NCBI GenBank assembly: GCA_977030845.1
Contig: OZ365118.1
Coordinates: forward strand, 19,592,001-19,656,000
DNA: 64,000 bases
Origin: Fimbriosthenelais zetlandica
Lineage: Eukaryota
Reading direction: 5' to 3'
Positions 1,569-46,500 of this stretch are shown here, one piece after another. The notes beneath the pieces are model-generated. The model made no database searches. It worked only from the letters and a program-made list of their open reading frames with translations, and was not told where the DNA came from. How positions within the stretch are numbered: the stretch's first letter is position 1; each line of letters begins with the position of its first letter. The position numbers and the translations under genes are program-made.

Positions 1569-1879
1569 CTAAAAATGGACACAGTAATCATCTCTTTATT
1601 CTGCTTCAATATACCTATACTTTACTTCTGTTTAGACAGTCTGATACATTACAAGATATAATTTTAGGTATTTTATTTGTAGTTTAGTGCTCAGTGGAAA
1701 TAGGCTTATATGGAAATACCTGTTCTCTTGGTCGTATTTATGATATCAATGATGGAATTATAACTCTTATTTGTACTAAAAGCAAAATATTGCTTTGATT
1801 AAATTTGAGTGGATTTATGAAGTTTTGACCTTTGATTGTTTGTAAACTGTAGAGTAAAGTAGACATTTAGTCAGCTCAC

Positions 1880-2631
1880 CTGGCTGGTACCTCGTCCACC
1901 TTCCTGTACTGTACCGTTGCTGTAGTCGCCAGGGAATCAACCACTGACAGTTTCCTGGTAGATGACGCCGCGTCCCCACCCCCCACCTCCAGGGTGTGGG
2001 GGTGGGGGTGGTGGGGGGTATGGTTATCGTCCATTACAGATGATACCAGGATGACAGGATCATCCATGGCCTGATCTCCAACATTACTCCTGTCCTCATA
2101 GTCCTCCCTGTCGTCCCTGTCTGAGTTGGAGTGTACACTGTGGTGTTTGGGTGTGTGAGGGTGGTGTGTTGGGGTAGGTGGGGGCTCCCGTCTAGTCACC
2201 CCTCCACGGTGGGGGAAGGCAGGAGGAGGCTGCAGCTGTTGATTTTCATCCTCCTCCTCCACCTCCTCCTCGTCGTCCTCTATTTCTGATGAGGATGGTC
2301 TGGGATGGTGTGTAGGAGGGGGGAGGGATGAGAGACCGGGTAAAGGGTGACCAAACTGATGTTTGTATCCAGCATGATGTCCATTATGAAGCCCCTCGTC
2401 TTTACCTTTCATTGAGTCACTTTGTTCAGGTCGTATAGGACTGGGAGGCGGTCTGTGGTAGATAATACCCAGCTTCTCCTTATCATGAAGATGGTCCTCG
2501 TCCTGCTCCTCTTCCCTGTCTTCCTCCTCTTCCTCCAGGTCCTCCTCCTCTTCCTCCTCCTCTATGGGGACGGGAACCACCTCTGATTCCTCGCCAGAAG
2601 TTGATCGTTGATCGTGGCTGGTCTCCATGGT
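1880..2631 (-). CDS. Large coding exon, Glu/Pro/His-rich intrinsically disordered protein (unassigned; possibly otopetrin-like N-terminus)
   Basis: About 250 open codons with poly-Glu, Pro and His tracts. Acceptor attatattaatag|ACC ATG at 2632-2633. Strong donor GCC AG|GTGAGC at 1879 (phase 2); the ORF stop codon falls inside the donor. Confidence 0.85.
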
Positions 2632-7800: not shown

Positions 7801-9982
7801 AATTCACCCCCTTGTCAAGGAAACCCCCTAATGGTCATTTTCTAAAACAATACTGTCAGCTCTTTCAGCAGCATTTCAGTCAGAAGAAAATATAATTTAT
7901 CTTTCCACAATTCGTACAAGGTAAATTTGCCTTGTATGAAATTTCAGTTCAAATCCTTGGTGCAATTTGTATATCAGGGTACAACTGTCCATCCCAGGGG
8001 GAGGCCCCCCCCAGGCGTTAATGTGCTCCTCTAGGAACTTTCCCTGACAATGGGGGATATGACTTTGTGTTCCATATATGCTTCACAAAACAGCATGAAG
8101 AGAGAGATGAGACAGTCCTGATTCAGCACAACACAACACTCGTATATTGAACCACATTCATTGAAATCTTGTGACACTTATATATAGTATAATAATCTAT
8201 AGAAAGTCAATCTATTATTTCTTTCTAAAATGAAATACTCTCACCAAAGTGAAATTATTACCTGTGGGAATGGAATTCATTTTGAAGTGATTAAAATACA
8301 TAAATATTAAATCAATTTATGACGTAAACTCTTAATAAATAACGAATATATTAAAGTGAATAAATCTAGTAAATTTGTGTAAACATGATAAAAGGTTATG
8401 ATTAAAAGGTGGACTAACACCTATAGGTAACTCCTGATATTGGTAATCTAGCATCTTTTGTCCCAGTCATTTCTTTTGTGAATTTCACGTTTGTCCACAT
8501 CATTCTAGTTATATAAAATCAGGCCGTAAAACCTCAAGATATACACATATAAAAGTATAATATTATCCTCGGGCAAAAAGGGTGAGGTTTAGAGAGTAGC
8601 CTACTCCATCTGTACCGACTATCGTAAGTTCATGGCAACTGTACTGGTTAAGTAATAATTAGTAAAATGTACACCATTTATATTATTTACATCTTTACTT
8701 ATGTTTACACTACTCTATATGAACGACTAACACGAGACCTAAAACGGGATGGTTACAACAACCTACTGTAGGGGGCGACACCTTTGCGAGATTCCAATGG
8801 GTTAGGTTGGGTAGACGCGGCCAAAGAGAGCCAGGTCTGTTCAGGGTATAATAGAATATGAGAACTCTTGTATGGTAGAAATCATGGTTAGCCATGGTTC
8901 AGTCAAAACGCATGTCAAACTACTGACGTTTCTCTTTCAGTAATTCTCAATCATGGCACACTTTTTCATGAATCAACGAAACAAAACCTTGTGAAAAAGT
9001 TGTATACAAAAAACGACAGGATCCATAGAAAAATATATGACAAAGTAGCACATGACTCTGACATGGGCAAATCACATTTGTTTTCTCAGTTCTTTTCTCA
9101 ATCTTTTGTGTTGTCTGGAAAATAACGATCAGAGTACAACGGATTTGCATGTCGTTTTTGTTAGGAAGAGATCCGAATGCTGCCCAGTAAGAGAGTACAC
9201 GGATAAGGGATGAGTGCAATGGTTCCTCTTGTAGCAATATTTACCACAATAAACATAAAGCTGTGTGAGAGGAGGAGGATACTGGAGTCTCCAGTCATGA
9301 TCCTGTGGTGGGAACATCTATTACTGAATTGACGGTCTATACGTGTATGATATACCACACACAGACCTGGTAATAAGATCCAGTCATCATCTAGTGAAAT
9401 ATGATCCGGGGTAATAACACATACGTTACGTTAAGGGTGCAGATCTTGTGCTCACATCTTGAGGCATGAGAAAGGCGCCACCAATTACCATGACAAGAAG
9501 CGGCCTATAGCAGGGACATACAGACAGACTGACCAGAGCTATAACGGCCAGCCCGCGTCCTAACCTACACCAACTACATTATCAGAAACAACTCCACGCA
9601 GAAAGGAAAATCTGTCACTACGAGGCGAGAGGTGTGCCGTGTAGGCGTGAGTAGAGTACATACTCTCCTCTCTCACTCTCAAGCCTCTTAACTCTGATCG
9701 TTGGTGAATGCAGTTCCTGCATCCCTCACTTTGATCTGTAGCCACTGGGCCTCTCATTTACCTGTTAATTAACAGGGTAGGCCATCATTTCTTACTTCAA
9801 GCCTACGGGAGGCCTTTTCACCTTGATATTCCCGGCTATATTTGGTGTTCACTTTCATCTTTTCGAGGGTAGATCCATTGACGTTCTGTCTTCTCTGACT
9901 TAGGTCAACATTGTAGTTGATTTCAAGCCGAATTCTTGTTTCCCTTTTACATTTTGAAATTCCTTTGCACTAAAACGGCACC

Positions 9983-10032
9983 TTTATTTAATGTGGATAT
10001 TCCAATAGGAGCTTGCTTGGTGGATTTTTATT
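9983..10032 (-). terminator. Candidate poly(A) signals of the otopetrin mRNA
   Basis: Two minus-strand AATAAA hexamers (9988-9983 and 10032-10027), about 140-190 nt past the stop codon. Confidence 0.35.
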
Positions 10033-10174
10033 CAACACATACTGATCAAAATCGGGGCTTTTTTTCACTTTTTCAACGCCCCATTCCAGGTGCATGCACC
10101 TGTACCCAAATTTCTACGAAGGCCATGCGATCTTTGGTGGCATCTGCGCATGCGTAGCGTTTGAGATGGAAACG

Positions 10175-10936
10175 TCACAACTCCTTACGTTTGATGATGT
10201 ATGCGTTGATCCAGATATCAGAGAGACAGACCGTCGAGTGGAAGCGGAAGAAGATGATGAGAGGGATGCAGATGTGGGCGATGATGTTCCACGGCATGAA
10301 GCCGTAGAACCTGCTATGTAGAGGCATGGTCTCAGCCTTCTTCACCTCAAACGTGTTGATCACCCAGAGTGAGAGGTTACATAGCAGAAGGAAGGTGACG
10401 AGTGTACGGCCCGGTTTGTGGTTGACATGCTCGTCGTGTTCGGCACAGCGTCTGAGCCCATCCAGGATGAAGATGGTCTGTATGGCCGCCTGGATGAATG
10501 CCAGGGCGCTGGTCCCTAGCGACAGGATCCCGATCAAGCCGTACTCCTCCATGGTGGACACGGAGGAGACTACGAGGAAAGCGTTGAACGTGCATAGGCC
10601 GAACAGGGCGATCACCAGCAAAACCGTGTCATAACTCCCCTCCTCCGGCATGGAGAAGCGCAACTGCTGCAGCTTGAAGAACCCAATGATGACTATGACA
10701 CAGCTGAGGAAGAGGAGAGTGATCTCGGTGATGTAGAAGATCAAACTGGCCGTGTCGCGATTCTCAAGCTTCTCGTCAAAGACAAAGAAGCTGCTGACGG
10801 ACACGAGGGTGAGGATGGTGACAAAGAGACCCAGGAAGAGTCCCTTGTTGGCCTTGTCACAGTCAGTCTGGTTGCTGCTGCTGTCTCCAGTGATGGTCAA
10901 TACTTGCTTCCCAGTACGGCCAACGCACTGGTACAT
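10175..10936 (-). CDS. Otop: Otopetrin proton channel, last coding exon (C-terminal TM helices)
   Basis: Family motifs DCDKANKGLFLG, KPGRTLVTFLLLCNLSLW and FYGFMPWNII...PLIIFFRFHSTVCLSDIW. Acceptor tttttctttgacag| at 10937-10938 (phase 0); TGA at 10177-10175. Confidence 0.98.
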   Translation of the reverse strand: MYQCVGRTGKQVLTITGDSSSNQTDCDKANKGLFLGLFVTILTLVSVSSFFVFDEKLENRDTASLIFYITEITLLFLSCVIVIIGFFKLQQLRFSMPEEGSYDTVLLVIALFGLCTFNAFLVVSSVSTMEEYGLIGILSLGTSALAFIQAAIQTIFILDGLRRCAEHDEHVNHKPGRTLVTFLLLCNLSLWVINTFEVKKAETMPLHSRFYGFMPWNIIAHICIPLIIFFRFHSTVCLSDIWINAYIIKRKEL

Positions 10937-11338
10937 CTGTCAAAGAAAAATAATCACTAACTTAGCAACAATTCTACTAGAATTGATCTATTTCATTACC
11001 AACTGCATGGAGTGAACTCCCCGCAAGTTATACAGTCCATATAGGCAACATCATTCTATAAGCTCTTGTGCTTCTTGTGCCTTTTCATATAATCTGTTCA
11101 AGACCAATCTATTCAATTTATAGGTCTCTGTGCAGCACATAGAAATTTATAATGGACATGTGTTGAACTAATTAACTTTACAGAAATACATCTTATTTAG
11201 GCTTTCGAAATAAGGTTGTAGTATATGACTTTGTAAGTAAGGTATGGTTTAAGTTGGGGTGATTCTTGCTCAGATTAAAGTATTTAGTAAGCTGACTGAC
11301 TGTCACATTAAAGTACTCAGTAGACGTATAGAGCTTAC

Positions 11339-22020: not shown

Positions 22021-22144
22021 CTCCACGTAGAACGTGGGTCTACGTGCCATGTCATGAGTGAGAGCATCACTCATGGGTAGAACCAGACCCAGCACGATGA
22101 GCACCAAGGCGTAGATCCCACACAGTAGGTGTGTGATGGCCGAC
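22021..22144 (-). CDS. Otop: Otopetrin first common exon (TM1: SAITHLLCGIYALVLIVLGLVLPM...FYVE)
   Basis: Acceptor ctctcttatcttgtccag|G (phase 2), donor GAG|GTAAGA (phase 0). The hydrophobic helix joins in frame to the TM2 exon. Too short for the ORF track. Confidence 0.95.
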
Positions 22145-22519
22145 CTGGACAAGATAAGAGAGAGAAATATAAGATATTGAACAGAACTAAACTGATAACG
22201 GAAATAAATGTGAATTTAATAATGCATTTATTTCTTTAAAACCTATTCATGTCGGAAGCTTCAGTGGCATAACCAGAAGTATATGGATCAAAATTATCGG
22301 CATACTGTAGACCTCATGTATGCCTGCTGTGTATAATCCATGCTAATCCATCACCTATATTGAGATAATGATAAACCTAGCCCTCTTATAACACCCAATC
22401 TGTGACAGTTGTAGAGATGTAGCACCTACAGAGATAGCTGAGGACGCTAGATGTGGTATCCAATTATAGCCCCCTCCCACAGTAATAACATTCACTCTGA
22501 TGTACCACCAGCCAGCCTG

Positions 22520-34293: not shown

Positions 34294-37245
34294 CTGAGGC
34301 GCTTTCCGTCAGAAATTAACGTATCAAAGACAGAAAGATGTAAAAATACAAAGCCCCTCCATGTTTTTGCTGGTCCTTCATTGTTTCCCCGTGGATTAGT
34401 AGCTGGGTGGGTTATTTGTGTGTGTGGAGGAGGGGAGGAGGGAAGTATCAAGGCTTCTGGTTGAGCCGGGGAGAGGAAGAGACGGGGTGGATGGGGAAGC
34501 CAGGAACGGCGTTAAGCCAAACAAGCTTAATGACACGCGCAAATGAAGCTAAATTAACTCATAAAACGACACGCGTGTGAAGGTAGCGATAAGGGGACAT
34601 GCTACCTCCTGACCTCAATATCTCACTCAAAAATCACCCAAATCCTCACAAAATCCAACTTTTACATCACTCAATCCTCCCAAAATCCAACCTTTACGTC
34701 ACCAAATGGCACCTAAAAAGCCCATCATCTACTCAAAAAGGTTGAGTGATTCCCATTGTTGATGTTGAAACTGATGCCTCACAGACATTGTATAGGACTG
34801 AAGGGGTACAACACCCAAAGAAATCACATTCATTTTCCTCCCCTCATTCCCTTCCACCCAATGTCACCAAAAAAAGGCTCATCAATTCCCAACTGGGATG
34901 ATTCCCTTTGTTGATTAGGAAAGCGATGCGCTGGGATGTGGCATTGTTTTGGTGAAGAGTTAAGAAGGGAGAGTTTATTCTGGATGTTCAGGGAGGTGGG
35001 GTGAATCATCAGCTGATGTCATTGTGAGAGGTCCCTAGATCTCAGTCCTCTGTCTTAATACCCAGCTCTCTCATATCACACGTTTAACGCATTATGTCAT
35101 TATCTTTATCATGATATCCTCTACATGACAAATCTCACAAAAACCGTAATTAAAAGGCATTTCTTATACTAACTCATTTTCTTTTCTATAGTCGTAAAAG
35201 AATGTCAATTATCTGCTTATTGATGAGATGATTTCACGGGGAAAAGAAGAGAAAAAAAGAGCAGAGATAACAACCAATTATGATGTGAAATATGGCAGTT
35301 TGCTGGTCCAGTTTTGTTGACTATATTGCCTTAATATTGACTGACTGTATCAAAATTCAACTTCTTGGCAACACAGATTGTCTGCTGGGCAACAACACCT
35401 CATAATGTCCTCAGTCAAATCCAAACATTTGCAAAATAAAATGAAAATATTAGTTTTTGTCTGGCCAGGCTGTGGATGGCCACGGGCCTAATTGCCACGT
35501 TTGACGTGATTGCCTCATTTCTGGCTCCGTGAACTCACAATCCGCTAATATTGAATTGTCAGATTGTCATTACCCGAAAAATGTTTATTGGGTGCATACT
35601 GGTTACCAGGGTCAAGAAGCCACTGCTAATCATCCTTAATTAGTGACATGTCTGCATATTATTACTTCTCCAGATGAAATTGTTTTGATGAATAATATTT
35701 TCACCACACACTTCATTCTGAAACACGTTCTGAATGATATTAATATTTATCTGGTGCTTTTCATGGCAGATGATGATGAGCAATAATTTGACTGGTAATG
35801 TTTTTCTGGTCGGTGTAAGCAGCAGACCTCATTTACATGACGGTAATGTAACGTCTATAAGAAGCTCTACCTTAATGTGCGAGCTGAGGAAACATCTCAT
35901 CTCCTCCTCCCATCAAGTCAGTTCCTGCCCAGTCACTCCCACCCAGCCCTCACCCAGCTCTCACACAGCCCATCTAATGCCACACAAACTGTACGTATCC
36001 ATGCTTAATGAATGTTTTCTCCCCTCCCTACCACCCATTAATCGCCTCCCATATTACAACCCTCTATTCTGTCCTCTAAGTACACACAGACACTCATCTG
36101 TCTCCACCAATTGCCTTGCCTTCTTCCCGGGTTCAGTTGTACTGCTTATTGTGCCTCCCTTAATTGCTATGTAGCAATACTTTCTGTTAGGGTGCTGTGT
36201 GTGATTATTTTGCTCTGGGATCTAATGGATTCTCACTGCATAACAACATTGTTATATTGGCTGTATATGATATTGTTATTGCGATAGCGTTTTGCTAAAA
36301 TATTCATTGCACATATATATGCAATACAGTATATATTCCCATGTCTCTTCTATAAGTGATGATGACAACATCTTTATTGTTAGTTAATGGTTTTATGGTC
36401 AGTGTCTGTAGCTTCCATGCAGCTTTTTCCACCATCGATCCATCCTTACAGGTGCAAACCTTGGGTTCCTCTCAATACATCTCTATCCACACAAAGGACC
36501 CGGGTTTGGGTTGTCAGGGGCGTGTCCAATATTCCTGCACTCAGGACATCAATGTGTACTGTGAAAATATTATTAATATTTGAAGGGACTCATTTTCCAT
36601 GATAATTGGACATCCTATAAATAGACATGTGTAACCTAAGATATGGGCATTTTTACTGCACTGGAGCCTGCCACTGATTGTAACGGCTACAATGGCTTCA
36701 CTTTATAAATAGTTTTCGACTTCATCAGTTTGCTAGTAAGGCTCTTGTTCACCTGCCATATCTTGTTTCTTGTAGCTAGCAGTATTGTGACAGTCAATGA
36801 TAATTGTCTAACCCGGTCAGACATGGCCTGCCTTACATGGAGCGTTATTAAAGTCTTCATTATTAATGTATGAAGCATGAAGTTATTACAGCTTCATAAC
36901 TGCCTCACCCAGCCACACACCACATACAGCTTCATATAGAGAGCTTCACTTATAGCCATGACCTGTCTTAATATCCATCCCTCCCACCATGGTTCCCTAT
37001 ATATACCCACTCATTGCTTCACCTTCTCCTGGGCCCTCCCTCATTCCTCCCCTCATTCTTATACACTGTAAACCCAATATGTTTAATTGACAGATCTTTA
37101 AACCAGTATTTTTATCACCCATAAGTATAAGGAGTTTTTCGATATATTTGAATATATTATCGCAGTAGAATTGCAATAGTATCAACCTTACTAGCATCAA
37201 GACTATAGTGAATATGTATAAGTTATCAGCAGGACCTTTCACAGC

Positions 37246-37512
37246 ACCTGGTCTGCTAGTGTAGACGTATTCCACCACTGTTAATTCCCCCTGCTATAAT
37301 TGACCTATAGTAAAGTATGATGACCAGCATTAAGGCTGGAGGACCCATCTTACCTGCCATACTGAGGGTGAGTCTCAGTACCTGGTCTGCTAGTTTAGAC
37401 GTATTCTACCACTGTTAATTCCCCCCGCTATACTTGACCTATAGTACAGTATGATGACCAGCATTAAGCCTGGTGGACCCATCTTACCTGCCATACTGAG
37501 GGTGAGTCTCAG
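37246..37512. repeat. 134-bp tandem duplication covering the 3' end and donor of the MACCC exon
   Basis: Copies start at 37246 and 37380 and differ by only a few substitutions. Confidence 0.95.
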
Positions 37513-37609
37513 CCTCCTCCTGTTCCTGGTCCGGATCATTCTCCTGGAAGTCATTATCATCTAGATTCTCATGGGGCTGGTGGCTACTACCTTTACAACA
37601 ACAAGCCAT
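37488..37609 (-). CDS. Otop: Alternative first coding exon of otopetrin (MACCCKGSSHQPHENLDDNDFQENDPDQEQEEAETHPQYGR)
   Basis: aagATGG Kozak context, 40 open codons, donor GGC AG|GTAAGA (phase 2), in frame with 22144. Confidence 0.75.
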
Positions 37610-38356
37610 CTTCACGTATCTCCTGCTCTAATCGTTATCACGTAGACACGGAGAGCCCGCGGTGTATCACCTCATGTCCACAGTCCTCCTCATTTGTTAG
37701 TCACCTAAAGTGCACCCCTCAGAATCTCTGTCGATATATGCTTATCCCAGGATAACTCCAGACAGGATAATAAAGCAGGATATCACCGCTGGCTGTATAA
37801 AGGTGCCAGTCGTGCCTGCATGTTGTACTGAAGTCAGTCCTTCTGAAGGCTTGTCAAAAGTCCTCACTTGGCGTGAGGTATATTGACAGGCGTATTGATT
37901 AGACTCAATCCTACTATTTCACACATGTAATGAAAGCAGCCACAGCCAGGCCTGATTACATTTAGAGCCAGCCGAATTCCAGCGGAAATTAGAACAGGCG
38001 TGAATTGAGCTTTCACAGCTCCTTTACAAAGGTGGCTTCAAAATCACGGTGCGTGGCTTCAGTAGATTGGTGGTGGACTGAGAAGAAAGCCACATGCACA
38101 CAGAAGGCCCAGACCCTGCTAGCACGTCTGAGGTGGCTGCATTTGTAGCAGGATCCCTTCACAAGATGCGGATTTACCACCAGCTGCTGCTCCTCCCACG
38201 TATAGCATCCACTCTCCTTGTCTTCCCCTCGTAACAAGGCTATTTTGGGTGCCAGCTTCCTTTACCAGCTCCAGTATTAGAGGGGAGGTTGATCTTGTAT
38301 ATGATGTATATAGGCACCTTCACCTCGCACTGCTTGCCCTGCTGTACTCCTCTACC

Positions 38357-38385
38357 CTGTATTCCCTGTATTCCCTGTATTCCCA
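38357..38385 (+). repeat. 9-bp repeat (ccctgtatt) x3
   Basis: Direct reading. Confidence 0.85.
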
Positions 38386-41300
38386 CCAGTTCATTTCTTC
38401 CCTCGGGATGACGCGCCTTTCATTCACTCAGCCCGCAAGACCTAAATGATCCCAGGGGTGGCCTTCTAAATCAATCTTCCCTTCTGAGGAAAAACCCGAG
38501 TTCCTGCCACACAAGGGAATGGTTTCCTCTCCTGCCTTTGTTTGGCGTTAAAGACTGCTTTGATGGAGCTACTCCTGTGTTGAGTGGTCTAAGAATAGCA
38601 GTAAAAGTAGACTAGTAAATACCCTGGAGTGGTAGGATGGTAGAAGTAGATGCTCTATACAACTTTAGATGTGTAGTTGTAACATGGAATGACCCCACCT
38701 CAGTCAGGGGTCATTCAGATGATCCAGGCTCGGATCTCCACTGATCTGTCCAGGCTGAATGTAAAGCCCTGCAGCTACAACACAGCCATGGAGGTCATCT
38801 AGATGTGAAATGCTTCTCCAGGCTAAACATTATTCCCCCGCTGACCTATCTGCTGCCACCTTGTTCTACTGTCGGGGGTTGAGTGGCCATGGCTGGCAGT
38901 CAAAACAACAGCCTGTCACCTCACCACGACGGAAATCTTTATCACACGTGCATAACACGCGCCTCTCACATTATGCTAATACACGCAAATGAAAGGCAAT
39001 CCGTGTTATGGGTTTGTTATAGCCGTGGGGGGAACCCCAGCTTACCTATCTCCTGTATTAATAAAGGTGCTATAGAATAAAGGCTGTGTATACACTGGAG
39101 CGTGTAATGCTATCAGAGATGGCACAACCCCTCCCACTGATTGTCTATAATTACCAGACTACAGGAGCTGCTCCTGGCGGTATGTACTGAGCAATCAGCT
39201 GATCAGAGTAACTCTCTCATCTTCTTATCACCAGCTTTCACTGTCTGGTCAACCAATTGTGCACCAGTCGTAATCAGTGAAGGCGAGACAACAAGCTCAG
39301 CCTCAATATCTGAGAGAGAGCAGAAGCAGAGCAGCTCTCTCCACTCTCCAGGGATGCAAGTATGTGAAGCCTTTTGAGACTGCTACATTTCCTGTATTGT
39401 ATTGACTATACTTCCTGAAGGAACCCCTGGTACTCCTCCTAGCTCAATGAAGCGCACCTAATTCCCACATCCAAACAGTACAGTGATGGAGAGAGAGAAG
39501 AATGGTGTTGGAGAATACGGTTACTGAGGAAATGCAATGGAATGGAGATGCATTGGAGTAGGTTGAGACGGTCCGCTTGCTCTTATGCTGAATAAGGAGG
39601 GGTGTGGGTAGAATGAAGTATACACATTCCTTACAGCTGCACTATACACTCAGCCTGGCTGGATTCACTCAGTGTAATACAGAGCTGCTCATGTGGTATC
39701 CTCAACACCATGAGCTGCTCACTCAAGACCAGGAAGATCTAATGTTGTCACGGCCAGCAAGACAATGTCCTGCCTCCAATGCTTCAGTGTGAGTGAGTGA
39801 GTGTGTGGGGGAGAGAGGCAGTCGATCCCCACCATGGTCCTCCTGAAGCCTGTCACAGGAGGAGGAGGGAGGAGGGAGAGCGGGAGGATGTGGGTCTAGG
39901 CCTCCTCGTCTCCACCTATAGATGGCCAGGCATGGTTAGGCTGCATCACCACAGCTGGGCTCCGTGCTGCTGCTCCTGTCCTGGGTATCAGGGTTGGTAG
40001 TATGGGTACTGCCTTGTCCCCCTCCTCTCCCTCCCAACCTTACATGCCATTCTCATCTACAGACGCATGCCTGCTCTCTCAACAAAAGACATTGATCGCC
40101 TCGCATTCTTGGTTCACTCACCACACATGAACTCAAGCTGTGACATTTTACGACAGTATTTGACATTTATTGTCAGTAAATTGTCCATATATGAATAGAC
40201 ATGAAGCTTGGATATAAGAGACCTATTTTTGCCCTAACAGAGCCTATAGTAACTATTGTCTGATCGTTTGTGGCTGATGTCATGTCTCATCTTTCGTCTG
40301 TAGTTTACCCACTGTTTCAATCCGCGTGTTTGTGTGTGGAGAATGCTGGCTGCTGCCATCAAGTAATGACCTGGTCGACCCCTGGGGAGAGATGGCCGAA
40401 TCTACGTCTCCGCTCCATCCTCAGATCCCAGGAGCGTGAGCCAAGCTCCGACTAGAAGACCAGATTACAACCAGAGCCATGCTTCAAATCCAAACCTTTC
40501 AACCGTGATAGAAGCAGAAGGACAAATAAAGCTTTTGTTGAGGGTGGAGCTTTTTTGTTTGGAGACAAATAAGAGGGCTGGGTAAGAGAGAGAAAGTAAG
40601 GGATCAAAGAATGTGAAGTTCAAAGATAGAGGGCTGAGGGTGATTAACTCCAGCTGGCAAGCTAGGCCAATCCCAGGCATCTCATTTCTCTGCTATTCCA
40701 CCTTTACAGATATCCCCTGGCATTTGGCACATGAGCTAGCTTATTAAGGGTATTTAAACCCTAAAAACCTCATTCATTGCGGACTTTTCTGCATATTTCT
40801 CATGGTGAATTAAGCAGCAATGCCTTACAGGGTATTGAGGCAGTGTTTGGCTGAGCTGCTCAGTCAGCTCACTCAGCTGGCCTCACATTGTTTACAAACA
40901 TGAGCGAGACAGGAGCAAAGTGCCTGCCAGCCAAACGCCAGCCAAACGCTGGAACAAAAGACGAGACATGCAACGCACGTGCTGGCAACTAAAGCATGCC
41001 TCCATGTAGCACGGCAAAAGGCAAATGTGACCAACAATGCAATGATTTAAATGTTCTTAAACACAAAACGCTTTGCCATCCTCACAAGAAGTACATTTAT
41101 TGACGTTTAACATGAATTAAAAGTCCCAACTTCCATGAGAGAAGCTGTTCATAGTCGGTATTTGACTACAGTGAATAGAAACTCTGAACAATATAGGGCG
41201 TGAGCTCCTTGTATGCCCCAGGTGTTCAATACAGGGCAAGAAGCTAGTGTTTCTAGGGTTATGAATGTAGGTTATAAGGTACGCGTGTGGTAGGTGGGGG

Positions 41301-43232
41301 GTGGGGTAGCACCAGGGTAAATGGTTGATATATCAGTGTCAGACACGCACCTGTATCCAATATTTATCACTGGCTCATATTTACTTCATGAAACATTGAG
41401 GCATGTAGTGTGGGGGTGTCCCAGTATTAGGGGTGTGTCCCAGTGTTAGGGCTGTGTACCACTATTAGGTAATCATCTATATGGAGGTCATATCGATCAT
41501 GTGTGACAGCTGACAGTTCCACAGATGTGCCTCAATAAGGCTGTAATAACACCATTACTCTCATTTTTATCACTAGCTGCAAAATTGGGGCATCATGTGA
41601 GCTGCTCTGAGCCTGGGAAATGCTCGGTCAGGGTGGGACCTGCATCACAATGCCAGGAGACTGGTTCCTTTAGTCGCCATAAGGTGGCTTCTACGCCAGG
41701 CCCCGCTCCGCTGCCGCTCACTGTTTTTCTCCCGGAAGCCACATTGCATGGCTTTCATTTGGTAAGAGCCCAAAGAGAGATCCCAAGCCTGAATACATCA
41801 AACAAAAACCCCCACTCCAGGCCTGTTCTCACCGCCCTCCTAGCTGTAATGTGCACGATGAATTAATGTGCTGTCAGTGGTTCCTTGAAACTTTTTATCA
41901 TCAATTTTAAATCTTTATATTCACTTTATAGCATTTTCCCAGTTGTTAAAAAACCCAACAAGAGTCAGCTGGCGTAACTATATCTCATGCAATGGGAGTT
42001 TTAAACTCCATTATTTACACTGAGGGCAACGCTTTCGGTGCTCCAAAAGTTTGCCATCTAATTTTAATCGATAATTACCCCGCACTTTGGCTGGATCCGA
42101 CACGTTTCAGGGCTGTCACATAAATATTTCTGCCCGTTTGGGTTTTTACTTTTTATCCAATGTATCAGACAGACTGATGTATAAGGTTTTTTTACTAGAA
42201 TATAAATGGACTGTTTGAAATTCTCCCCTTTGAGATCGACTGAGTCCAGCAAACATTGAGATTGATTGCCAATATTGGGATCAATTCTCCTCTAGCTACA
42301 AACTCCGCTGAACTTATTGGCTCAGTGTGAGATAAAATGTGGATAGAAATAACTGGGAAACAGGTAGCAGACTAAATGCTGTCTCACCCAAATATGGTTA
42401 AAATGGTGAGCAATCATTGGCCGCAGTTGAGGCATGTTAGACGGCCTTAGAGACAGTGGTGAATTGATGAGGACAGTGAGAGGATTCAGCCACCTCCTCA
42501 TTGATATTCTAGCTGTGAAGCCCTCTACCAGTCAACTATAGCCGCCAGTTTACACACATTCACATTACACATGCCTGTACAATCACCTGATGACCATCTT
42601 ACGTGACAAAAAATAATGTAAATGTAAGCCTACAGGTGGCACTCTGAGTGTGGACAGGAAAATAGCAACATAAAGTATTCATAGTCTCTCCATTTATATA
42701 GCTGCACTCCTCCTTCAAACAGAATTCATCATCACACATTAATTTTTCATATACTTCATCTCCCACAGTCGTATTATTGTCCTGTTGCTATACCCGTACC
42801 TCTCCACTTTTTCATTCCCTTATAAAACGATTTTTAATGCCACTCAAGTGTTTTTTCCAATCACATACATCCCACATGTTCCCTGAAGCATTGTATAATC
42901 CCAGTATGAACCTGTTAATTACCTTGGCACAATGCTGTCTAAACCGATTACAGATACATACATACTTATAAAGAACATTGACCCAAACCCTTCATAATAA
43001 TCTTCACACCGTATACCTCTTCCACATAATTGCTTTAGGAACAAAGGTTAAAGGTGAAACATTGAAGAAATATGATGAAGAATACTAGGTCTAAGGTCCC
43101 GTATGTAATATAAGAAAGATGTATAGATGTATAGGAAGGGGAAGCTGATGCACCAGATGAACATAAGGCGTTATTGAAGCGCAAAAATGGCATTACGCGC
43201 GCTGAATGACTCTACCAAAATAAAGGCACGTG

Positions 43233-43287
43233 GAGCTATAGAAGTGCTAGCTATGGCTATAGAAGTGCTAGCTATAGAAGTGCTACC
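43233..43287 (+). repeat. Short repeat (gctatagaagtgcta) x3
   Basis: Direct reading; lies just inside the intron after the 43320 donor. Confidence 0.85.
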
Positions 43288-43319
43288 ATAGCCCCAGGCT
43301 GTACCCAGCCTATACTCAC

Positions 43320-43417
43320 GCCTCAGACTGCTGGGCCGCCTCAGGAACATACGTATCCTTGTTCATATTGACATTTGACCGTCCTTTAGTCACTAATTGA
43401 TGTTGAGTGGTCGTCAT
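43320..43417 (-). CDS. Otop: Alternative first coding segment of otopetrin (MTTTQHQLVTKGRSNVNMNKDTYVPEAAQQSEA)
   Basis: gaaATG at 43417, 32 open codons, donor GC|GTGAGT (phase 2). Confidence 0.65.
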
Positions 43418-43424
43418 TTCCTAC

Positions 43425-43453
43425 CTGGAGAACCCTCCTCCAGGGCTGCTCAT
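43425..43453 (-). CDS. Otop: Alternative short first coding segment of otopetrin (MSSPGGGFSR), or uORF
   Basis: agtATG 22 nt after the predicted TSS; donor TCC AG|GTAGGA (phase 2). Confidence 0.55.
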
Positions 43454-43470
43454 ACTGCTAGCTGTAAAAG

Positions 43471-43504
43471 ACACTGGAGGAGCCGAGGCCAGCAGTCTTT
43501 TATA
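43471..43504 (-). promoter_or_regulatory. TATA + initiator core promoter inside the large intron
   Basis: TATAAAAG at 43504-43497 and an Inr-like CCAGTGT with its A at 43475, 29 nt downstream of the first T. Confidence 0.7.
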
Positions 43505-46500
43505 TGTTACGGTCTTGGTGCCAATGGCCTATATGGACTGCACCCACTCTCTCCCCTCCCCTCTCTAGCTAGCCCATCCAGGTGATTGGGATGGGTGGCT
43601 TGGTTTGGTTAAATCCTCACATCATGCATGTAAACCTCCCTCCTCCTGTTTTTTCTTCCTCCAGAGCCTATCCAGGTATAACGCGCTCTGGTAGAAAGCA
43701 GGTAGCTCTATATATACTCTACGTCCACCTATAGTCACTGTGGTACAGATTGCCTGTATTGAGCCTGTGGGAGTTGTACTGTATATAAGGTGGTATGGAG
43801 TATAGGTAGCTCTCTCCTCCAGTAGTACAAAGGCGGGAGTTGAAGCACCAGCCCTGCACACATCTGCCTCCAGGGAGTGGGCGCCTGGAGGGATTACATG
43901 CATGTAGAGGGGTGGGGGCGTGGCCTTCACACATGGAGGAACATGGTAGAAAGTACCTCATCAAAATATACACTCATTCCTTTAACATTTCCTTACCAAA
44001 TGTTGGGAAAAAACACTTTTTCCTTTACCATTAGGTTACAAAATGTTGGACAGACATTAGTTCACACTTAAGTCGATTCCGAAAATGAAATTTATGAATC
44101 GATTGACCAGGGCATTAGTTAGAGAGTTATATATTCATATCTCAAGGCCACATTAACTGGAATTTTAATATTTCAAGGTGACATTAGCTGAAATATTCAA
44201 GAACCTAGATGTCTTGTATAATATATGAAATGTTAAAGTGAGTAGAGTTAAAGTGGTGTATAGACCGTGGGAGGGTAGGGTGACGTCTATTGGTTTAGAA
44301 TAGTAAGATGATATATATTATGTAATGTCCTCCACCACCTATCATATGATAAGAGTATAGAAGCGTCCCCCCGCGTCATGTAACCAAGGCCACCATCCCT
44401 GACCTCACCCTCATAAATATCAACATAATAGATCCACCAAGAGATCCCACCCTTCCTCAACTACCCTCCTCAAAACAGGCGGGGGTCACTCCAACATTCC
44501 TTAACTTTAAATCCACACCCTTGCTTGATTTCCTTATCAATTATCAACGAAGAATATATATTTTCAGACTTACATTATATCTATGGGTAGAAACGTTATA
44601 AAGCATCTTTGTGAAAGTTAATATATTAGGGGAAAGTCCCCAAACTGACTCCCTTTTCAGGAAAAAACTAAATGTCCACAAGCCCAGAAGAGTGTCCCCT
44701 CTTCCCCCTACCACTGGTTCCCCATCCTTATCGATCTTACTCTCACAAATGGGTATTTTATATATGGTTTTAGCCGTCCAGTCCTAGCCAACAACCACTG
44801 AGCTGGGGAAGAAAATTTACATAGATTATGCATGTCTGCTCTGAAAAAATCAATATGGGTGCAAAATGGAATGTGATATAGGGAACGGTCTGTTAAAAGA
44901 TTCATCGTGCTGAAAGGATCAATATTGCTGTTCTCCCCCGAGAAAAAATCTATTCACTAAAACCTATAGATGGCAGATCTATAACCTTGCCTCTAAATTT
45001 ACTCGTGGAAATTTCCCAGGGACGGATTTTAATTAGACAGGTCTAGTTTGACATTCTGATTTGAACTGGCTTAACTCAAATAATAAGCCGATATCAAAAA
45101 CGGACCACATCCTAGATAATCAAAGAAAGTGGTCGCCGCAGTCTTTGTTTTCGGTCTGGATAGAGTTACATTAGTTTAGCTCGGGCTCAGAATTGGCTGG
45201 AAAGTTTATTTTATATTCTAGCTGGGTAGTTTTTAGTAAAATCTGCGGTGTTGTTTGCACACGAATCTTGTCAACACTGGGGACGGCGGTGGTAATAATA
45301 AATGAGGCCCTGCCCCGACTAATACCACTAATGGCATGTAATTGATTTAATGTACACCATCCATTTCATTTTGTATTGAACACTCCCAGGTCTAATATCT
45401 GGTTTAAATCTTAATATCCATTACACCGAATGTTGACTTGTGAAATATTTAAGAGATTACGTGCAAGTTGTGTGATAATACTGTACATAAAACCAGAGAA
45501 TGAATCTCATTCTCTCTAATGATCAAAATCAACTGAATACATATGGCTGAATTATTACCCCTCAAAACTTATTGAACCATAGATCAGACATTTGTATATA
45601 GTCCAGATTGTCGCCCATCCTTACCATATCTCAATCGCCTCACTTCAATCCCTGAAAGTGACGGAGGTCCCATCAGACAGGGGGAAGGACAGAGTAGCAG
45701 TGACTGGGGGATAGAGAGAGAGACAGTGAGATAGTGGGTAAGGGGTACTTGACTGGCATCAAGACTCTAGAGACTGACATGAGAGGAGCCTTCTTGAGGT
45801 AACATCACATGTCCTGATAAAAAGGCCCTCTGCCAATGACCTCTACCTACATACTATCAAAGGGCCTCAATATGAGGCCTTTGGGGGCAGAATCAGGGGT
45901 TTGGGGGCGATGGGAGGGGAGTTTGGGGGCGAGGGGAGGAGGATAAATATGGAGAGAGAGTTCTGTCAATCGAACATACTTTCTTTGATCCCCTGAGATA
46001 GTTTCCGCCTCTGGGTCAGCGCCTCTAGATAACAGACATAGCTAGTAGTTGTAGGACCCACATTGCTTATTCATCGACATAAGTGACCCCCAAGGACATC
46101 TCTATCTCTGTCCTCCTCTCTCTCTCTAAAGAATAATATCTCTGACCAAGCAAACCTCTCTAAGGTGCGTGCAAATATTCAAGACTTGTCAGAGTAATAG
46201 TTTAAGGACACGAGCTTTTGATTCCTGTGACCAAAGATGCCTTAGGATTCAGTGATTGTACTTTGATGCACACTGTTCAAGAGTATAGATGAGAGATGAC
46301 GGGTTGTCGTGGAGTATAGTTAAGATAGATATGAGCCTATTTGTCTTTATCGTAATGACTTCCTGCTATGTTCACCACGCACCTCCACCCCTCTACCTGG
46401 CTTCCTCTCCCATCTGCTTCACCTTTTTTCCTCACATCAGTCAGTCTGATGTTTTACCTTCATATTTCATGCTCTTTGTAGACCCCACCTTCACTCAAGT

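Follow-up and report, generated by a model that had tools for sequence, protein, structure and literature searches.

A promoter-like cluster with two in-frame ATG/donor pairs lies upstream of the probable first coding exon of an OtopLc-like otopetrin gene

Introduction

N-terminal proteoforms that arise from the use of alternative promoters and first exons are described in the excerpts of PMC13082882 drawn on here. The locus studied in the present work would likewise offer two or three 5′ exons, used one at a time and each starting from an ATG of its own, that lead to one phase-2 acceptor, and, as in the proteoform systems of those excerpts, its candidate first exons would alter only the cytosolic N-terminus before TM1. 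In contrast to the alternative first-exon systems covered there, comparative support at this locus exists for one exon only, i.e., the one at 37.5 kb (referred to as the MACCC exon), while the exon at 43.4 kb is a candidate.

A second group of related systems comprises upstream open reading frames (uORFs) and leaky scanning, the latter being described for very short 5′UTRs in the excerpted part of PMC13219423. Judged by the excerpts of PMC13219423 / PMC12871742 and PMC13631847, the present locus is alike in having a predicted leader of 22 nt, a closed upstream ATG, and another ATG that follows in frame after 4 nt. It differs from the uORF systems treated in those same excerpts in that the uORF would arise only when a splice donor is skipped and that its stop codon lies inside this donor (which is automatic in phase-2 introns).

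The host gene of the locus matches the otopetrin/OtopL channels (PF03189; OTOP1-3 structures 8ug4, 6nf4, and 6nf6) over its whole length and, like otopetrin homologues, has its TM1 preceded by a basic residue. The otopetrin N-terminus before TM1, in contrast, is unconserved and ranges from 0 to about 155 residues in the homologues compared. The original prediction for this locus placed two splice donors behind a single TATA promoter, and proposed that the choice between them decides whether one short ORF serves as the channel N-terminus or as a uORF. Here, we compare this proposal with the gene structure, with chance expectation, and with a contig from a related organism.

Results

Gene model of the otopetrin host

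The window (i.e., the whole 64-kb stretch of DNA that was analyzed) carries on its minus strand an OtopLc-like otopetrin gene with seven coding exons. The last exon matched the Pfam Otopetrin profile (PF03189) with an E-value of 1.3e-63 and two further exons did so at about 1e-11, while the closest solved structure was PDB 8ug4 (Otopetrin-2, E = 4e-29), so that membership of the otopetrin family is indicated by a profile match as well as by a match to a solved otopetrin. The nearest named proteins came from the annelid Dimorphilus, the brachiopod Lingula, and molluscs, several of them being labelled "OtopLc-like". Judged from these similarities, the host gene encodes an OtopLc-like member of the otopetrin proton-channel family, and the genome is that of a lophotrochozoan and annelid-like.

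Exons 2 to 7 were found in the expected order by tblastn with the full-length orthologue P0151, and their placement was guided by the corresponding orthologue transcript (P0151/L002; 69% amino acid identity in the last exon). Exons 3 to 7 are supported, taken together, by PF03189, tblastn with P0151, splice sites, and an open CDS:

22144-22021, minus strand: exon 2 (TM1), reading G + SAITHLLCGIYALVLIVLGLV..., with acceptor cag/G (the slash marks the splice border), common to all three candidate first exons
20606-20297, minus strand: exon 3
15864-15704, minus strand: exon 4
14588-14393, minus strand: exon 5
11487-11339, minus strand: exon 6
10936-10175, minus strand: exon 7, stop codon included

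Every border between these exons follows the GT-AG rule and the pyrimidine tracts are strong, with such a tract present at 6/6 confirmed acceptors. Each of the five confirmed donors carries G at both –1 and +5, and either A or T at +4. The cag/G at 22144, designated as the shared acceptor in the original prediction, is indeed the start of exon 2. Since the first base of exon 2 completes an Arg codon that the intron interrupts, any upstream first exon must end in phase 2. Two loci from the JGI collection (L003 and L004; 63-68% amino acid identity) confirmed exon 2 and its phase-2 acceptor, and the G at this acceptor was also present in L004, a distant relative. Exon 1 was not recognizable within 2.4 kb in L003 and L004, and a "GGGFGK" match in these loci was rejected as a poly-G accident. 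The entry of the species itself in the protein collections (P0156) is a genomic ORF that is 99.6% identical to the last exon, and the collections searched held no spliced or transcript-derived product of this species.

A few further observations concern the gene and its surroundings. At the exon-2 acceptor, reading through into the intron (22145-22152, minus strand; tcc agG) encodes Ser-Arg, as found before SAIT in the orthologue P0151, and the tblastn match therefore runs 5-6 nt into the intron; an extension of exon 2 over 22145-22152 was accordingly rejected as an alignment trap. In L004, the counterpart of exon 3 comes in three pieces spaced by about 400 nt (9082-10129 of JAAUXT010011318.1), a split that suggests that introns were gained or lost in the family. 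On the same strand and downstream of the otopetrin gene, a 251-codon open frame that is very rich in Glu/Asp and Pro (EEEEEEEDLEEEEEDREEEQDED...; 1879-2631, minus strand) is possibly an exon of a neighbouring gene.

Sequence elements of the 43.4-kb cluster

All sequence details and coordinates of the original prediction were recovered on the minus strand. The elements of the cluster, from 43504 to 43320 and into the second donor, are as follows:

43504-43497, minus strand: TATA-box-like TATAAAAG, read in the sequence; one of two exact copies on this strand in the window
43478-43473, minus strand: Inr-like TCCAGT (fits BBCABW) with its A at 43475, the predicted transcriptional start site (TSS)
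43453-43425, minus strand: ATG1 mini-ORF, MSSPGGGFS + AG, phase 2 at donor 1; open CDS of 576 aa when joined to 22144
43424-43419, minus strand: donor-1 candidate GTAGGA in the context CAG/GTAGGA; 7/9 consensus positions
43417-43320, minus strand: ATG2 ORF, MTTTQHQ...QQSE + GC, phase 2 at donor 2; open CDS of 599 aa
43319-43314, minus strand: donor-2 candidate GTGAGT in the context GGC/GTGAGT; 6/9 consensus positions, C at –1, in-frame TGA

The A of the Inr lies 29 nt downstream of the TATA box (counted from its first T), within the 28-33 nt that the core-promoter rule sets for the Inr, and the spacing upstream of ATG1 reads exactly as had been predicted. The ATG1 codon (43453-43451) has A at –3, is preceded by a predicted leader of only 22 nt, and is followed by nine more codons (MSSPGGGFSR when spliced at donor 1). 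At donor 1, the exon ends at 43425, the GT occupies 43424-43423, and a TAG in frame with ATG1 occupies 43423-43421. A single GAA codon separates this TAG from ATG2 (43417-43415), which shares its frame with ATG1 and remains open for 32 codons plus GC up to donor 2. The proposed sequence of events (i.e., ATG1 closed as a 10-codon ORF by the GTAG of donor 1, and ATG2 opening the same frame one GAA codon further on towards a second phase-2 donor) is therefore present as described, and the 10-codon uORF from ATG1 to TAG could form only on an mRNA that does not use donor 1.

The stop codon itself follows from the phase. Behind a phase-2 exon, the next codon begins at intron position +2, so that donors reading GTAG, GTAA, or GTGA supply an in-frame stop; the TAG is thus automatic for a phase-2 GTAG, and in-frame stops are likewise supplied by donor 2 (as TGA) and by the MACCC donor (as TAA).

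Both candidate donors have the phase that exon 2 requires and are of mediocre strength (7/9 for donor 1, 6/9 for donor 2), although the GTGAGT of donor 2 is a perfect intron-side consensus. Neither the G at +4 of donor 1 nor the C at –1 of donor 2 occurs among the five confirmed donors of the gene. By their sequence, donors 1 and 2 are possible weak sites, both atypical for this otopetrin gene.

The 601-nt region around the cluster, the 5.7-kb interval, and the ATG2 peptide are each single-copy in the genome (447 Mb, 79 contigs), so no internal (paralogue) comparison is available. Behind the TATA box, neither a known RNA gene nor a tRNA was found. A search of sequencing runs listed no RNA run that contains 43300-43520 or 9700-10939 (the latter spanning the last exon), a result that is not to be read as evidence of silence. 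About 35 nt downstream of donor 2 starts a 15/21-nt tandem repeat (GCTATAGAAGTGCTAGCTATG-like; 43234-43285 of the window).

Three first exons compatible with exon 2

When each candidate first exon was joined to exon 2 and the downstream exons, a stop-free CDS resulted in all three cases, including the two that had been claimed for the 43.4-kb cluster (MSSPGGGFSR joined to the TM1 exon, and the ATG2 frame):

43453-43425, minus strand: ATG1 / donor 1, CDS of 576 aa
43417-43320, minus strand: ATG2 / donor 2, CDS of 599 aa
37609-37488, minus strand: MACCC exon (MACCCKG...QYGR), CDS of 607 aa

The MACCC exon consists of 40 codons plus AG, has a CAG/GTAAGA donor (8/9), and carries a Kozak context with A at –3 and G at +4. 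Upstream of exon 2, 123 candidates running from an ATG to a phase-2 GT were counted, against 81±11 in shuffles, so phase compatibility by itself means little; among these 123, the MACCC exon has both the top donor and the top Kozak context.

The residue created at the junction before TM1 is Arg for donor 1 and for the MACCC donor, and Ala for donor 2. In 10/11 full-length homologues, Arg or Lys precedes the conserved S-[AGS]-[ILMT] start of TM1. Since any consensus AG/G junction yields Arg, this comparison is a weak argument against donor 2 and offers no support for donor 1. The N-termini ahead of TM1 (0 to about 155 residues in the homologues compared) are unalignable, and with this part unconserved across the family, homology cannot pick the true first exon. 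Comparison of the three candidate peptides with the N-termini of the 11 full-length homologues gave nothing beyond shuffles, the 5′UTR and N-terminal 80 residues of the orthologue L002 (P0151) had no significant similarity to the window at the DNA or protein level, and a search with the 41-aa MACCC peptide returned no matches. At the locus of P0201, from a closer relative (88% in exon 3; 87-kb contig of ENA sample ERZ26222911), a called gene of 41 aa, the same length as the MACCC ORF, lies 9.9 kb upstream of exon 3, which is only a hint. A duplication relationship between the 43.4-kb and 37.6-kb exons was rejected, the similarity being no longer than 7-12-mers.

The MACCC peptide opens with Cys-Cys-Cys followed by an acidic run, a composition that suggests a lipid-anchored cytosolic N-terminus. 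The end of the exon overlaps a 134-nt tandem duplication (37242-37513; 2.0 copies, 93% match), in which the final ~26 nt of the MACCC exon are repeated along with CAG/GTAAGA, so that a second identical donor stands 134 nt into the intron.

Chance expectation of the cluster

Copies of TATAAAAG number two per strand in the 64 kb, and its combination with an Inr at 43504-43475 is the sole canonical pair on the minus strand. Across the window, TATA-like motifs had an Inr at 28-33 nt in 11/106 cases (about 10% by chance), and only one of these 11 TATAWAWR+Inr sites, i.e., the 43.4-kb cluster, was followed within 100 nt by ATG-ORFs reaching a phase-2 GT. When the 42-kb region upstream of exon 2 was simulated with a first-order Markov model, a TATA+Inr pair with one compatible exon appeared in 15% of the runs, while two in-frame ATG/donor pairs behind a TATA+Inr were seen in 0/300 runs. 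As this simulation was built after the pattern had been seen (i.e., as a post hoc test) and the scan covers many windows, it makes a moderate argument rather than a strong one.

These figures bear on one functional interpretation of the cluster, in which it would provide an alternative promoter together with a first exon that has donor 1 as its sole donor. Transcription would then start at about 43475, and a 22-nt leader with 29 coding nt would be spliced to 22144, giving a 576-aa isoform whose 10-residue cytosolic N-terminus (MSSPGGGFSR) would be without the Cys-rich acidic head of the MACCC form; ATG2 and donor 2 would be intronic coincidences. The canonical TATA+Inr spacing and the A at –3 of ATG1 fit this interpretation, as do the CAG at –3 to –1 and the G at +5 (as in all confirmed donors), the open CDS, and an AG/G junction giving Arg where 10/11 homologues have Arg or Lys; its elements, TATA+Inr plus one compatible exon, are expected by chance in about 15% of cases in 42 kb. 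Yet the Arg is the default of any consensus AG/G phase-2 donor and hence not independent support, the G at +4 is atypical for the gene, the peptide is too short for a homology test, and the stretch 43425-43474 has no alignment in the contig of the relative (see below). We regard exclusive use of donor 1 as unlikely.

Comparison with a related organism

Contigs of four sequencing runs were aligned on 37475-43474, which covers ATG1, ATG2, and both donors, with the TATA box (43504-43497) lying outside. Run X2, from a related organism, contributed one 19.5-kb DNA contig, whereas runs X5 and X6 had no contigs aligned on 37475-43474. The X2 contig aligned to 37480-37609, i.e., from the MACCC ATG to 8 nt past its donor, with 25 differences in 130 positions and no gaps. 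Codon changes in the MACCC exon relative to this contig were synonymous in seven cases and non-synonymous in four (within the 22 codons for which differences were listed), and the PHENLDDNDFQEND segment of the exon encodes an unchanged protein in spite of four base changes in the X2 contig. Gap-free alignment with mostly synonymous change is the signature of a coding exon, and by this sequence comparison the MACCC exon appears to be under purifying selection. Among the three candidate first exons, such independent support (from the contig of the relative) exists for the MACCC exon only, and on this basis it is the best-supported protein start and probably the main one.

In the 43.4-kb region, the X2 contig matched a sole block at an identity of at least 82%:

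43347-43372, minus strand: 26-nt block within the ATG2 ORF

The next 30 letters of the contig fit 43373-43405 only in a gapped fashion, the best alignment having four gaps that total 11 nt. Its score of 23 falls between the 90th (19) and 99th (24) percentiles of window chunks. Overall, 26 of the 98 nt of the ATG2 ORF were aligned in the relative and no coding-type conservation was found, in contrast to the gap-free MACCC exon that served as control. Nothing in the X2 contig aligned over 43405-43474, so ATG1 (29 nt), the TAG, and ATG2 were not covered. Since the 26-nt match is on the same contig as the MACCC exon, a homologous segment exists near the MACCC exon of the relative, and, as far as the alignment goes, this segment does not behave like the coding MACCC exon.

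This result weighs on the two-donor switch of the original prediction, by which one TATA promoter would serve both donors: splicing at donor 1 would make ATG1 the channel start, while skipping of donor 1 would turn the same codons into a 10-codon uORF ahead of the 599-aa ATG2 isoform, the output of which would be set by leaky scanning or reinitiation. All sequence elements that such a switch calls for are present and in frame, the double arrangement occurred in 0/300 simulations (post hoc), and both donors are sub-optimal, as is often the case for competing alternative 5′ splice sites. The 22-nt leader, moreover, would favour leaky scanning past ATG1, to go by the excerpt of PMC13219423. Against this, the TAG comes automatically with a phase-2 GTAG, donor 2 has C at –1 and creates Ala where the family has Arg or Lys, and the ATG2 ORF is poorly conserved (with gaps totalling 11 nt) where the MACCC exon was kept codon by codon. 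In addition, a gap of 4 nt between a stop codon and the next ATG, as from the TAG to ATG2, is unfavourable for reinitiation. Taken together, we consider a working two-donor switch quite improbable, and the indirect tests lean against it without refuting it.

The same observations apply to exclusive use of donor 2, in which case ATG1 would be a constitutive 10-codon uORF on every transcript and ATG2 would start the 599-aa isoform. The perfect intron-side consensus of GTGAGT and the open CDS agree with such use, and the 26-nt block kept in the relative sits inside the ATG2 ORF. The objections to donor 2 (C at –1, Ala at the junction) and those drawn from the conservation of the ATG2 ORF count equally here, however, and make this arrangement very improbable.

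Finally, the X2 alignment shows a joint from 37609 to 43347, although the distance between both pieces in the contig of the relative is not given. This raises the option that the 43.4-kb segment is, or derives from, a non-coding leader or the promoter-side flank at the 5′ end of the MACCC exon. It would either be spliced just upstream of the MACCC ATG, or unique sequence (5.7 kb) would have come between the two in this lineage; the MACCC mRNA would in that event carry both ATG1 and ATG2 as uORFs. Should the pieces be neighbours in the relative, the 43.4-kb segment would represent the ancestral 5′ flank of the MACCC exon. Along these lines, the homologue of 43347-43372 may adjoin the MACCC ATG, an AG directly precedes this ATG, and the orthologue transcript L002 has a 334-nt 5′UTR with several upstream ATGs. 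On the other hand, the skipped part would be TC..AG rather than GT..AG on the gene strand, the pyrimidine tract seen at 6/6 confirmed acceptors is absent before the MACCC ATG, the 26-nt side of the joint is short with its distance to the MACCC piece not given, and the 5.7-kb interval is single-copy, so there is no obvious mobile insertion. An origin of the segment as leader or flank of the MACCC exon is thus highly doubtful.

Two other features of the alignments were noted. The reading of the shared GATACGT as a target-site duplication was rejected, since the ends of the X2 alignment do not fit. Within the interval, at 39782-39893 and 41178-41214, many short contigs of very high depth from runs X1 and X2 aligned at 83-90% identity; these pile-ups are probably pieces of a dispersed repeat common to both species.

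Discussion

The explanation that we favour, at even confidence, is that the cluster at 43504-43320 does not serve the otopetrin gene as a regular coding first exon and that the conserved start is the MACCC exon. In the conserved mRNA, the upstream phase-2 exon that exon 2 requires would be supplied by the MACCC exon (37609-37488). The cluster, 5.8 kb further upstream, would be a place where a canonical-looking TATA/Inr pair and two short ORFs that end at GT sites co-occur without the proposed use. The TAG that closes ATG1 is its most striking element, yet a phase-2 GTAG brings such a stop automatically, and it is no designed switch. What was observed directly is the set of motifs, the gene itself, three open CDS models, and the conservation of MACCC coding sequence; that the 43.4-kb cluster is not used is what we infer.

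Some observations are at odds with chance co-occurrence. The cluster is statistically unusual (the only one of 11 TATA+Inr sites with phase-2-compatible ATG ORFs behind it; 0/300 simulations, post hoc), both donors are in the phase needed by exon 2 with both CDSs full-length and open, and the MACCC contig of the relative also contains a homologue of a part of the ATG2 ORF. Moreover, alternative N-terminal exons often evolve fast, and weak conservation of the cluster is therefore compatible with lineage-specific use.

At its most ambitious, the proposal states that splice choice toggles 10 codons between being the N-terminus of an otopetrin and being a uORF that gates a longer isoform, so that a 135-nt module would couple isoform and yield. 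We hold this to be very doubtful. If true, it would be a compact case in which the splicing outcome makes an ORF either coding or regulatory, found in the gene of a sensory proton channel and in a little-studied animal group; the ingredients, i.e., alternative first exons, alternative 5′ splice sites, uORFs, and leaky scanning, are already known. The practical gain lies in the identification of an OtopLc-like otopetrin with a complete exon model, in which the MACCC exon emerges as the conserved coding start, and it is from the MACCC exon that annotation of this gene should start.
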